Notes: a model not told the origin generated them from the sequence alone. Shown: positions 24,901-30,900, numbered from the stretch's first letter. The stretch is 64,000 bases of DNA from Gnetum montanum (GCA_015680685.1 MNCI01002788.1:8413-72412), one strand, 5' to 3'. Numbers and translations are program-made.

Positions 24901-27900
24901 AAAATGTTTCCATAAAAATGTGCTATACTAACTAAACCAACATTTCTCAAGTTTTCTTGCTGAGATTGCATTACTCTTCTTGTAACTAAGAATCTCACAG
25001 CCTGTGTCATGTCACAACTGCCAAATTAGTTCCCAAATGAACTGTTAAAAGTCACAGGTAAAATCAAATTAAAGATATGTTTATTATACAATGGGATCGT
25101 GATCTTTCAGATTATATATTTAAAACAAGATGTCTAGCTGAAGTGGTTAAAGGCATTATCTAGAAAGTCTCAGTCATATGCTAAAAAACACTCTATGTGG
25201 CATTCTAACACCCTAGCAGTTGTAGGTCTTGGGTATAGTCCTCGCATAGTTTTATTTAAAAAGGTTTTTAAAAACACCTTGATTGTACCTTACGAAATGA
25301 TTCAGAAGATCTACGATGGAGCTTGAAATCATAGACAGGAAGGTTGACAGACTGACCCTGCTTCAAGTTATTAATACATTCAAGGAGTTGCTCGGTATCA
25401 AATGCATCTGCAAAAAAAATGTCAAGATTTCAGATGCTCAAACGTTTGAAGAAACAGTAAGATACTTTAGTTTCAAGCATCATCAATAATATAAAATATC
25501 AATTATAAGTAACAGAAGGAACAGCAAGAAAACGTGAATTGTATCACAACATAAAAAGAAAGTAAGTGTTACTGCAAATTAAACCCAATGAGTATGCTGA
25601 GAATAAATACACCCATTAATTAAGATTTACGCACTTCCAGAAATGCCCAATTCAAGATGCATATACACTTGAAGAAATGACATAGTACGTTTAAAATACT
25701 ATCACCAGATATTTTCCCTCTTCCGTCTCCTTTAGAAATAGATTATTAGCATCACAATATTGTTTGGACCCATGTGCTCTATTGTTTGCTTACAGTTTCA
25801 TTTGTTTGTTTTGCTTTAAAATAATGTGTGAGACTTTGTAAAGTTTTTTTAATATCATATTGTAAACCATCGTGGGCAAAAAGGGCACCACCCCGCAGCA
25901 ATTAATTAAGCATAGGTATCCAGTGGTTTGAGATTGGCAGGGGTTATACAAATGAGAAGATTAAGGCATTTATTTGGCTGGTTAATCATTCGGCAATACC
26001 TGTGAAGGCAGTATTAGCGCAGATGGGGGCAAATGTGTCTGACACATGTCTGCTTTGCATGTTGGACGTGGAGACAGTGCCCCATTTTATGTACATCTGC
26101 CCATTTACTGGCAATGTTCTCAGAGCAGCGAATCTCTGACAAGATTTGAAATTAGATGGCGACTCTAGAGCGACAACAATCTTGTGGACACTCTAGAAGG
26201 CCAAAAACCACTGCATATTTCAAGTGAAACTGTTACTGTACTGCTACCAAGGTAGATTGCAGCTAAGGGGCTTAGATTGTGGAAAGAGGTGCAATCTGCT
26301 ATGGGGGTGATTTGACTTTTGAGCTGCCCTGCAATGGGTACTAGGACAACCCAGTGCTCTAGAGCCTAGTGACATGGGTTGGGTGGGGCAGACTTGCTAC
26401 CCTTGATCCAAGGGGAGCCAGATTTGGAAGATGAGGCATTTTTCACCAATTGGGTGGGAGACCTTACTCTATTCTGGGGGGTTCAGATTGCTCTTACGAA
26501 GGAGTCAATTGCCACAATGTTGGGGCTGCCGACAGAGGAGAAGCTGTCACCACCATGGGATGTGGACTTCAAGATGTGGAGGAGTTCTTTTCGGGGCCGG
26601 TTCCCAAGATGGGGAGTGGCCAAGTCCTTAAGTTGGCGCTCCCGAAGCTCAGCAAGATGTGGCCGAGTTGGTCAAGCAGTACCTCATCTAGTTCAACAAG
26701 GCTTGGAAACTCCAAGGCATGCATTTTACTTTCATGTGTTGCATGGTCAATTTATCGTGGTTTTTCCTTGATACACTGCAGTGCTAGCATTCGAGGTGGC
26801 ATTTGAGGTTGTTCTGGTGCTTTGGCAGGCGTTGCAAATAGGGGCTCCCCCTCCGCCTATGGGTACCCCCATCCAAGTGATTTATGGTCGACAACACTCA
26901 CAATGTGCATCATCAGTGGTTGTGGATTTGATTGGCAATTTAGAGGGGCCCGAGGCTGGTTCTAAGTCGTTGGATGAGCCGAGAGAAATGAGCCACCAGG
27001 GTTTTCTGCAGGAGGTGCATGCCCCTCCCCCACAAGGATTAAGTGGGGGGGTGCAGGCACAAAGGGGTCTGAGGACCATGCTAGAGATAGGTTTTTTTTG
27101 TTGGGGGGGAGGGAGGGCATGGTTGGGGGAAGCTGAAGTTTCAAGGTCCCCTCAACTGGATGCAATGCTGGCTGAGGCCGTTGAGGAAGTGGCGAATCAG
27201 GCACCGGAGGAGGAGAGGACTCTATGGGAGAGCAAGTGGGCAACTTGGAAGGAAGAATTTCAGCGACAATTGGAGGAAATCGAGCGCTAGCACGTTGAAG
27301 CAACCAAGGAGGAGAGGCAGCAACAAGACCTAGCTGAGGCTATAGCTAGGGATACTCTAGAGGCTGAGCTGCGAGAAAGCCTAAGGGTTCAAGTCCAAGA
27401 GGAAGCAAGGACCCAAGAAATGCTGGCAAAAGAGGAGCAAGAGTGTAGGGCGCAAGAGGAAGAGGAGGCTACCTAGATGCAACAACAACTTAACCATGCC
27501 CACGAGCAAAGTGCAAAGTCCTAACTACAACAGGGGAGGTGCCCATATGTCATCATGGACATAGGGCAAAATACGTCGTGGTGCACGTTACATATATATA
27601 TTTGGGGCAAGGGGCATGAGATGCACCTAGATGGAGAGGGCAATATGGAGGAATGCACAAGGAAGGAAGAGGCCTTCAAAACCTTTCAACAAGTGATGGC
27701 TTTCGTGGACTCGAAAAGACACTGTGCAGCTCTCAACACTATTCACTGTCAAGAGAGGGTTATCTACACTTGCACACACCTTCTTGTTCGTTTATAGGGT
27801 GTGGATCACTTGGCCCTTGTTTTTGTTCCATCGCTGCATGGTCTATTTTCCGTTGGGCATGGGTTGGCCAGCTATTGGTATCAGGAATCATTCTTTTGAC

Positions 27901-30900
27901 CTGACACGTAGTGTTTTTGGGAGTGTCAGGGGGTGAGGCGATGTCACCCCATTGGGGTTGATGTATATAAACAAGTTGTAATCTTTCACTGTTAATACAA
28001 TGACCCAAACTTTTCTCAAGAAAAAAAAAAGACCTAACCAATGTTAAGTCGGGGTTACCCCTATCCTAACCTTAGAAGCATTATTTAGAGCTAATTTCTT
28101 TTCTTCACTTGTTTAATGATCAACATGTGTGGTGTCTACATGCTTAAATTTTTTATCATCAAAGATTATTAATTTGACATTAGTTCTGTAATTATTATTG
28201 CCTTGTTCATGTCCCAAATTGGGGCCTATAAAATATTCTCGAAAATATATATGTCAATGTCATAACATGCACATGTTGGATATGTTTTTTATTTTTTTTT
28301 CTTTTTTCTTTTTTGAGAAAATATCAGGATGAATTAACTCAAAAATATGTACTCCTCAAGAATCAAGAGGCAACCCCAACCAGAACCCAACCTCCATTGG
28401 ACCAAATCCCAACAGGTCCAAAGCCCCTCCCCAAAGTAACACCTACCATACCCTAGTCTAAGACCAGCCCCAGCTGTCCCATTCCATAGGTTTGCATAAT
28501 TTTTGCATCAAGCACTATGCCAAGCCCTCCCAAACTGACAGCCCCACCCACATAAAAAACCGTGTTTGTCCCCCAAGCGTTCTCCCTGAAGCCCTGTGTA
28601 AGGAAGCAACACGACCACCCAAAAGCTGGTTATTCATCTTTGCTCCAGTTTGTCCTCTAAGGGTGTGAACTCTCCCTTGATTCCTACAAAACCAAATCAA
28701 TCCATTGCTAGCACCATGTGATCAGTTGCAATAGCTCCACATGCTACCTTTCCAAAAGATCCCCCATCCGTTGCAAATCCAACACCCTTTGACGATTTGC
28801 CTCCCCTTGCATTTCCATCTGCCGTTGCATCCATTTTGCCTCCCATGCTACCCATTCCTCAACCCTTGCTTGTTCGACCACCACCAAACAAGTGTTATCC
28901 ACCATCATTTGGACCTCAACATGAGTGAGCAGAGTCAATCACTCCGCACCACTCGACGACCCAAGAATCGCCTCCAAACCCTTTCCACTCACCACTGGGC
29001 CTTTACCCTTCACCCCCTAACCAATCCGTCACTGCCCCGTTGGTAGACTACGCAGGGCTCCAACCAAACCCACCTAGGAATCTCAATACACCCTGATCTC
29101 CACAAAGCAATAATAACCCCAGGGTGCTAACCCGACCTCTTTCATCTCAAAGACTCCATAAAATAGCGCAACATATTTACCCTAATGTAATGTTTCAGAC
29201 CACATAAATGCGAAGTGAACTCCTAGCAACTTTCTAGGGTAGCCTAATTGAACCAGAAAACAATCGAACAAGACAACTGCATCTTGGCACAACATAGGAA
29301 GAGCCACCTTCTGTATGTGCCCGCTTGTTGACCAAGAGATTGCTCCGTGAAAAATTCATGGGTATAACTTTGATTGCGGAGCACCGAAACTATGATTTCC
29401 CCTTCCGCCGCCATGCCCAGAACCTCAACCAACGTAGCCTCCATCACAATAATCCATTAACCCTAAAAACATGTCTCCTGTCCCACCCAATGATCAAAGA
29501 AAGACTGATCAGGCAACCCTGGCTCCCCCTCAATCTGCCACAACATGTCATCCCATCCCATTCTGACCACCATCTCCCACAACTCTTCATTCTTCTGAAA
29601 CTTGGTGACTACCAATTCATATCTACTCCTTTACCCCATAGTACTCACCACTTCATGCCACAGATGCAGCCTTGTTTTAGTGATGGACCCTAGCGCCAAT
29701 AGCTATTACCCACAGAAAACCAAAGTATTCCTGCTTTTCCAGTCGGCCCACAAGATGGCCAGCTCTTGAGATGTGCATTGTTGATATCGAAATGATTGAT
29801 CATTTCATATATCAATGTCAATTCATGAGGGAGGTTTGGTGGGCAGCTAGGCTTACTCCTCCACTAAGGTTGAGCGGAGATTCAGTTTTGTCATGATCTC
29901 CTCTTTTCTCATTATTTAGATAAGTATTTAAATGTTAGAAGCTAGATTGGCTTATAAGATTGATGTATTTAATAGTTGCATATAGTTCTATATAATCAAA
30001 TTCTAGAACTAATTCCCTTTGAGGGTTAAAGAATTGGTACTTTGTCATATGGTTCTTATTCTCACATGTTCTTGAAGCTTATGTCATGAATTCATGCTAA
30101 ATCTCATCTAACATCTCACTACATGTTTAAATTAGCATATCCATTGTAATCACTAGTCTATCTTGATCTCACTAGTCCATTCTAAATCTTCTAGACCATG
30201 GGTTGGATGTCTTAGAAGATATGACATAGAGGACTTGTCATGTTACAACTGCTCATGAATAATTTGCAATAGTGTAAAACTATAAATTAAATTTTAATCT
30301 CCACTCTCTTAAAGGTGCCCGCACCAATAGCGCCTTATGCATAAGTAACTAGGCAAATGCCTTTATTTTATTAACAAGAAACCCGTGCCAAATATCAGTC
30401 CAACCAGCCCCCAGCAAATACATTGCCTTGACTAACTGTTTGGGAGATTTGCCCAACACCGCCTTCACTTCCATCCCCCTAACATGTTTGCAAATGTTTC
30501 GCTAGAATTGTGATTCCCCCTGTGCCCACTTCCCATCTACGGTATTTCTGCCCCATCAGCCTCACCCACTAAGTCTATCCTACCTCTAGTTCCATCAGCC
30601 AATTCACAAGGCACTACATTCCCAGCTTGACCTTGTCACTAAAGGGAAGCATCGCTATCCCACCAACATTCTTCGGCCTTGTGGTCTTCTCCCAACATAC
30701 TAAATGCAGCTTCTTCCCACCCTTACCTCTAGACCAAATAAATTGTCGAATGAGCTGGTCCATCTTTTGAACCACCCCCACAAGTGGGATAGCCATTGAA
30801 GCAATGAACTATGCTATTGCTATAAGCACAGTGGAAGCCAGCAACATCTTCCCTTTCCTGGTAAGAAATCTATTAGCCCAATGATCTATCTTTGCACGCA

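Follow-up and report, generated by a model that had tools for sequence, protein, structure and literature searches.

Two decayed L1 elements of Gnetum montanum share a protein-coding extension past the zinc finger of ORF2

What may follow the zinc finger in the second open reading frame (ORF2) of a plant L1 retrotransposon is the question raised by a stretch of Gnetum montanum DNA of 64,000 nt (GCA_015680685.1 MNCI01002788.1:8413-72412), the whole of which is referred to here as the window and in which positions are counted from the first nucleotide. To our knowledge, the one way in which the C-terminus of ORF2 varies among plant L1 elements is that some have RNase H there and others do not. 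The window consists of plant DNA rich in transposable elements (TEs), and it contains two L1-type long interspersed nuclear elements (LINEs) arranged tail to tail with 260 bp between the copies, one on each strand (the plus copy and the minus copy). An initial annotation had proposed that both LINEs carry a shared coding region after the ORF2 zinc finger (zf-RVT), either as a third open reading frame (ORF) or as a fused C-terminal domain. We found that this region, hereafter the tail, is real and part of the element: it is collinear in the two copies, in frame with ORF2 and marked by a coding signature. The tail is a genuine and lineage-specific extension of the coding sequence of plant L1 ORF2. 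All inferences on the tail are drawn from these two decayed copies in the one window.

Past the usual end of ORF2, the plus copy continues for 1.7 kb and the minus copy for 1.3 kb before the poly(A) is reached. When the tails alone were compared by tblastx, the best high-scoring segment pair reached 50.6 bits (E 5e-12) vs. 32.2 bits for the best of 120 shuffles of the minus-copy tail, which bears out the proposal that the two LINEs share a coding region at this place; the peptide pairs quoted in the initial annotation are likewise present in the sequence. In the main tblastx block (plus 26379-26546, minus 29561-29394), 37.5% of 56 residues are identical, and in the second one (plus 27189-27263, minus 28881-28807) 44% of 25 residues. 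Under permissive settings, collinear blocks form a chain that has a summed E of 2e-22 and stretches from the zf-RVT as far as the poly(A). A purpose-written frame-aware alignment, in which the allowed moves are codon matches, codon gaps and frameshifts, placed plus 26164-26891 against minus 29771-29037 with 86 of 225 residues identical. Past the residues EFF, the minus copy carries the homology in a second frame (29352-29203), and the ungapped G-x11-KM spacing that had been remarked upon there is therefore coincidental. Overall, homology is demonstrable over approximately 200 codons and over a block of approximately 40 codons at the start of a charged stretch further down, and to this extent the annotated mutual homology of the tails holds.

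The junction between ORF2 and the tail is the same in both elements. The last ordinary blocks of ORF2, i.e., the W..WK.RN..F motif together with a block that has Met-Gly at its end, are located at 26164..26306 on the plus strand and align to minus 29771-29634. From the terminal ATGGGG of the latter block to the GGGGAGCCA of the tail (Gly-Glu-Pro), the distance is 111 nt, or 37 codons, in both copies, with the same frame on both sides, and protein similarity is continuous across the junction in the tblastx chain as well as in the frame-aware alignment. Further along the plus copy, the frame of ORF2 is kept over a stretch of 341 codons (26772..27794, plus strand) interrupted by only 3 stops, as compared with 13–17 stops in the other frames, and none of 2000 shuffles reached this value. 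Over 183 aligned codons, the tails are 37% identical in amino acids and their nucleotide identity is 0.48, 0.65 and 0.31 at codon positions 1, 2 and 3, respectively, a signature that is partly favoured at positions 1 and 2 by aligning on amino-acid similarity. The ORF2 end that adjoins the tail shows 43% amino-acid identity between the copies. Given these comparable identities and the near-random third positions, the tail has diverged like the protein that it follows.

The limits of the minus copy place the tail inside the element. This copy is a full-length, decayed L1 (28292..34526, minus strand) with ORF1, ORF2, the tail and an A-rich end (28292-28315, minus strand), and it is flanked by a target-site duplication (TSD), TGTTGGATATGTTT(T/C)TTA, at 28274-28291 and 34527-34544, of which 17 of 18 bases match and 14 are exact. 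The TSD encloses the tail, as had been noted initially; because both the TSD and the A-rich end bound this copy outside the tail, the latter lies within the element. The composition of the tail is also that of the LINEs, with a GC content of 0.475–0.51 and a G-over-C skew of +0.20 to +0.41, as compared with 0.469 and +0.325 for ORF1 plus ORF2 and with 0.31–0.36 and about -0.1 for the flanks. At the DNA level, blastn of the two tails showed no similarity except for approximately 22 nt at the extreme 3' end (91% over 22 nt), where both copies have the motif TTTTCTCAA followed by the A-rich tail (plus 28011-28032; minus 28292..28330, with the motif region at 28300-28330). This common 3' motif may be a recognition element for the reverse transcriptase (RT) of these LINEs.

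These observations bear on whether the tail is foreign to the LINE lineage, with similar sequence having been transduced at the 3' end, captured or placed there by chance independently in each copy. The tail-to-tail arrangement of two copies so close together might suggest a local rearrangement; however, the lack of DNA similarity between the tails shows that they are not the product of a recent inverted duplication, and the identical position and frame of the junction, the enclosing TSD, the LINE-like composition and the common 3' terminus all speak against a foreign origin, which we regard as scarcely credible. The earlier conclusion that the tail belongs to an L1 lineage and has been under selection, rather than being a 3' transduction, is thus supported by the shared junction and frame, the collinearity, the codon-position signature, the composition and the 3' motif.

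In some plant L1 LINEs the zf-RVT is followed by RNase H (RVT_3), as described by Smyshlyaev et al. (2013) according to the passage in which PMC5203782 cites that work. To obtain comparators, L1 loci were retrieved from metagenome contigs with an RT alignment, which yielded 21 loci. Two of them, L004 (ERZ780678 NODE-287) and L006 (Ga0214495_1000361), are plant-type L1 copies in which the zf-RVT is followed by RVT_3/RNase H and by a short 3' untranslated region (UTR) with poly(A). In both, the linker to RNase H comes after the same W..W..RN motif; in L006 a single ORF runs from the zf-RVT via this motif and the linker into RVT_3/RNase H, and in L004 RVT_3/RNase H is found in the next ORF. Because L004 and L006 carry RVT_3 after the same motif, the tail takes up the RNase H position, in an ORF that would ordinarily run on. 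The RNase H-bearing elements thus share with the present ones the RVT_1 and zf-RVT backbone, the W..W..RN motif and a C-terminal domain added at the same position. Their addition, however, measures approximately 130 codons, whereas that seen here measures approximately 450–500, is unrelated in sequence and includes a long charged helical stretch.

That the conserved part of the tail is itself a very diverged RNase H, so that nothing was replaced, is a thought invited by its location at the RNase H position, but we consider it very improbable. No Pfam match to RVT_3 or RNase_H was obtained with tail pieces of either copy, in alignments to L004 and L006 over their RNase H regions the tail scored 32–45, within the ranges of shuffled sequences (maxima 49–54), whereas the two RNase H regions scored 192 against each other, and an RNase H domain has only a third to a quarter of the length of the tail. 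The initial annotation had seen no RNase H-like pattern here, and this statement stands after the Pfam searches and comparator alignments, for which the two individual copies served as the sequences.

The next question is whether the tail was read as part of ORF2 or as a third ORF. As had been described, the tail of the minus copy is in frame with ORF2 and separated from it by one TAA (29631..29633, minus strand), which is in frame on both sides. If this stop were original, ORF2 would end just past the Met-Gly block and the tail would be produced by reinitiation or by stop-codon readthrough; the stop found two codons past the same block in the unshifted frame of the plus copy, and an in-frame TAG common to both copies further down, would fit with stops that are part of the design. 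The evidence from the junction argues otherwise. The two copies have no ATG in common where the tail begins; the 111-nt distance is exactly kept and divisible by three, with protein similarity running through it; on the aligned path, the minus-copy TAA is matched in the plus copy by a sense codon, together with local compensating frameshifts; L006 reads through the same point in one ORF; and two further stops lie 17 codons upstream in the minus copy, which indicates that stops in this part are ordinary decay. A third ORF is therefore quite unlikely, and of the two options that had been offered as a pair, an in-frame fusion to ORF2 is the one that we favour as probable, given the lack of a conserved start codon, the spacing in multiples of three, the similarity through the junction and the single ORF of L006.

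The shared TAG is located at plus 27288-27290 and minus 28746-28744, which is the same aligned position in the codon view, and its context reads Glu-Arg-stop-His-Val-Glu; past it, the plus copy is open for 61 charged codons. By our estimate, CAG-to-TAG decay that took place in parallel at a methylated CHG site would be enough to account for it where two copies are concerned, and the TAG may instead be a designed or regulated stop.

Taken together, we consider it likely that the two elements, both dead, represent a pair of families that diverged long ago within a single lineage of plant L1s, that ORF2 of this lineage ran on in frame for approximately 450–500 codons past the zf-RVT, and that this extension was acquired once and kept under selection at the protein level. 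Precedent for such a gain exists in the R1 LINEs of insects, whose ORF2 acquired a C-terminal SF1 helicase domain (PMC4686597); there too a foreign C-terminal domain was gained by ORF2 and kept in a lineage, although in another LINE clade and host and with another domain. Celine of poplar, an ordinary two-ORF plant L1, has in common with the present LINEs a DUF4283 ORF1, an RT in ORF2, a TSD, a poly(A) and a length of approximately 6 kb, but it was described without a coding tail past ORF2 (PMC11288735). We found no description of this ORF2 extension in a literature search.

Several results weigh against an ORF2 fusion kept under selection across families. Both copies are dead, and the TAA at the junction of the minus copy together with the frameshifts there in the plus copy means that two copies leave room for a separate downstream ORF. 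The middle linker and the last 0.4–0.7 kb gave no significant alignment between the copies, the shared 3' end excepted, and for that last portion the homology initially noted could not be demonstrated. The alignment effect on codon positions 1 and 2, mentioned above, has the same bearing. In addition, the tail was absent from all 21 metagenomic L1 loci, and a scan of metagenome contigs with the tail alignment gave no match. A phmmer search of 26373-26768 against 1.84 billion representative proteins returned no credible homologue, the in-frame part of the query being only about 58 residues, and a word-based protein search with a tail piece was empty, so that the library, word-based and metagenome searches provided no independent intact carrier of the tail. 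Finally, what the tail does is a matter of inference. The only phmmer match (E 3.7e-4, query residues 92–124) was treated as spurious, since it fell in an out-of-frame part of the query.

Four parts can be told apart in the tail. The first is a conserved domain of approximately 200 codons, which spans 26308..26891 on the plus strand, where the aligned path crosses 4 stops and 6 frameshifts, and 29037..29630 on the minus strand, where it crosses 5 stops and 2 frameshifts. It is followed by a poorly conserved linker that is partly rich in Gly and Pro. The third part opens with the second conserved block, which contains a W-x3-W motif (28735..28881, minus strand; 44% over 25 residues and 53% over 15 residues by tblastx), and forms in the plus copy a stretch of 95 residues rich in Glu, Gln and Arg (27189-27473, plus strand; E 27%, A 13%, Q 12%, R 9%) that is predicted from its composition to be helical and coiled-coil-like; most of it is missing from the shorter minus copy. 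The last part, of approximately 100 codons, is seen in the plus copy at 27474-27794 (plus strand), after which a short 3' UTR would end in TTTTCTCAA and poly(A).

On the reading that we prefer, an ORF2 fusion, the tail module would have been acquired once, before the split of the two families, and would then have evolved under selection on the protein. It would have been translated as part of the ORF2 protein (ORF2p), with the junction TAA a product of decay, and would presumably have acted in cis in the L1 ribonucleoprotein (RNP). The conserved domain could bind protein or nucleic acid and the charged helical stretch could be an oligomerisation or spacer element, and the tail, standing in place of RNase H, might supply a function for which relatives with RNase H have other means. 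The keeping of some 500 extra codons under selection across families with no remaining DNA similarity would point to a needed function, for which RNP assembly, targeting and escape from silencing are candidates.

Where might such a module have come from? A Pfam search with 21 tail pieces from both copies, at E values of up to 1–10, returned no family, including RVT_3, RNase_H, DnaJ, Transposase_32 (PF20167), ATHILA (PF03078) and PMD (PF10536). Sequence searches of the PDB with tail pieces yielded nothing relevant, and viral contigs gave no match. Very large protein libraries held no detectable relative of the conserved domain, which may therefore represent a new protein family. With an RT piece, the word-based protein search gave one match, at 36%.

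One origin to be weighed, which would be compatible with the ORF2 fusion, is that the conserved domain derives from an accessory ORF of long terminal repeat (LTR) retrotransposons of the Athila ORF1, Transposase_32 or PMD type. A language-model search for look-alikes of the conserved domain placed a Transposase_32 cluster at rank 22 with a score of 0.86, which serves as a lead only. By eye, the pattern of the tail (an aromatic pair, W-V-G, a hydrophobic strand and L-G-(L/M)-P/A-x-x-G-E) resembles what we take to be the Transposase_32/Athila-type family. Against this origin, none of the Pfam pieces matched PF20167, PF03078 or PF10536 even at the permissive E values given above; a frame-aware alignment of either tail to the Transposase_32 ORF present in the window (7861-8548) scored 33–34, where shuffles reached 30–50; and in tblastx of the tails against the whole window each matched only the other LINE. 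We therefore regard the LTR-accessory origin as doubtful. Transposase_32 is related to ATHILA ORF1 (PF03078), the accessory ORF of Athila (PMC11728184). That ORF and the present tail are alike in being accessory regions borne by retrotransposons and followed by coiled-coil-like sequence; the known carriers of the former, however, are LTR elements and not LINEs, and no statistical similarity to the tail emerged in any test run.

The Athila-like accessory ORF of the window is itself in three pieces, the largest of which (7861-8548, plus strand) matches Transposase_32 (PF20167, E 1.5e-5, below the curated cut-off), and it is accompanied by a coiled-coil-like ORF at 9092-9322. No second copy of this accessory ORF was found within the window, and the word-based protein search with an accessory piece gave no match.

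As for the end of the tail, it could be a J-domain, the Hsp70 co-chaperone module, that is too decayed here to be detected. The plus copy is open for 90 codons at the right place (27525-27794), and a loose H-L-D followed by an F..V..A.....KR pattern can be seen by eye, the H-L-D not being counted as evidence. The tests that we applied were negative: eight pieces from both copies gave no Pfam match to DnaJ (PF00226) at E values of up to 10; phmmer against the PDB returned no J-domain chain; BLASTP against the J-domain of E. coli DnaJ was empty and Smith-Waterman z-scores were 1.2 and 2.0 at best; an AlphaFold2 (AF2) model of 27525-27794 was too poor to use, with a predicted local distance difference test (pLDDT) score of 54 and mostly strands; and the language-model search with the C-terminal piece provided no usable match. 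There is, moreover, no HPD motif, and the region cannot be aligned between the copies. Either the copies have decayed too far for such tests or their families were without that end, and a J-domain is at present a tentative possibility, with the odds against it.

A bolder scenario would combine these leads: in an L1 lineage that is old and diversified, RNase H would have given way to a tail of three parts, namely an LTR-accessory-type domain, a coiled coil and a J-domain that brings the Hsp70 co-chaperone function to the RNP. In that case the shared TAG could serve as a regulated stop and determine how much short ORF2p is made relative to the long form. We know of no LINE that carries such a three-part tail, and we hold the scenario to be rather unlikely. 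Should the LTR-accessory or the J-domain link prove true, the tail would represent an exchange of modules between retroelement classes, or a transposon with its own chaperone cofactor.

The remaining features of the two elements are those of plant L1s. The plus copy (25866..28032, plus strand), recognised from a Pfam match to zf-RVT and from the tblastx chain, is 5'-truncated and retains the C-terminus of ORF2, the tail, the 3' UTR and an A-rich end at 28018-28032. Its truncation point is near 25866-25890, which leaves it without the RT, its zf-RVT is located at 25906-26136 (plus strand; PF13966, E 3.7e-12), and a TSD was looked for and not found. In the minus copy, RVT_1 of ORF2 was identified at 31360-31935 (minus strand; PF00078, E 1.5e-12), and the plant-type DUF4283 of ORF1 at 33759-34076 (minus strand; PF14111, E 2e-5), with 24.7 bits just under the curated cut-off of 27.2 bits. 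An APE-type endonuclease gave no Pfam match on the decayed pieces 32531-32761 and 32017-32247 of the minus copy. This copy is heavily decayed, with many stops elsewhere in addition to the junction TAA and the two stops upstream of it, and on account of these stops it is dead. Its zf-RVT was recognised by homology to that of the plus copy and is split by an inversion: the Cys/His half lies on the plus strand (29769-29890), beside AT-rich foreign DNA, in a rearranged piece at 29769..30288. When compared with plus 26053-26166, the inverted half showed 44.7% identity over 38 residues by tblastx (E 2e-7) in opposite orientation. The rearranged piece fits with a segment that was inverted locally and contains an insertion as well. 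The AT-rich DNA measures 399 bp (29890-30288) and has a GC content of 0.31, and an 18-nt imperfect inverted repeat (29872-29889 and 30289-30306) is found at the junctions of the rearranged piece.

Elsewhere in the window, assembly gaps (runs of N) are present at 1198-1300 and 1418-1798, and ORFs listed across them are artefacts. An Rfam search of 25500-35000 gave no match. Pieces of a Copia-type pol (Pol_BBD, gag_pre-integrase and SH3_retrovirus) at 48941-50374 on the minus strand and a Gypsy-type RT-RNase H piece at 54743-55258 on the plus strand make up an ordinary TE context.

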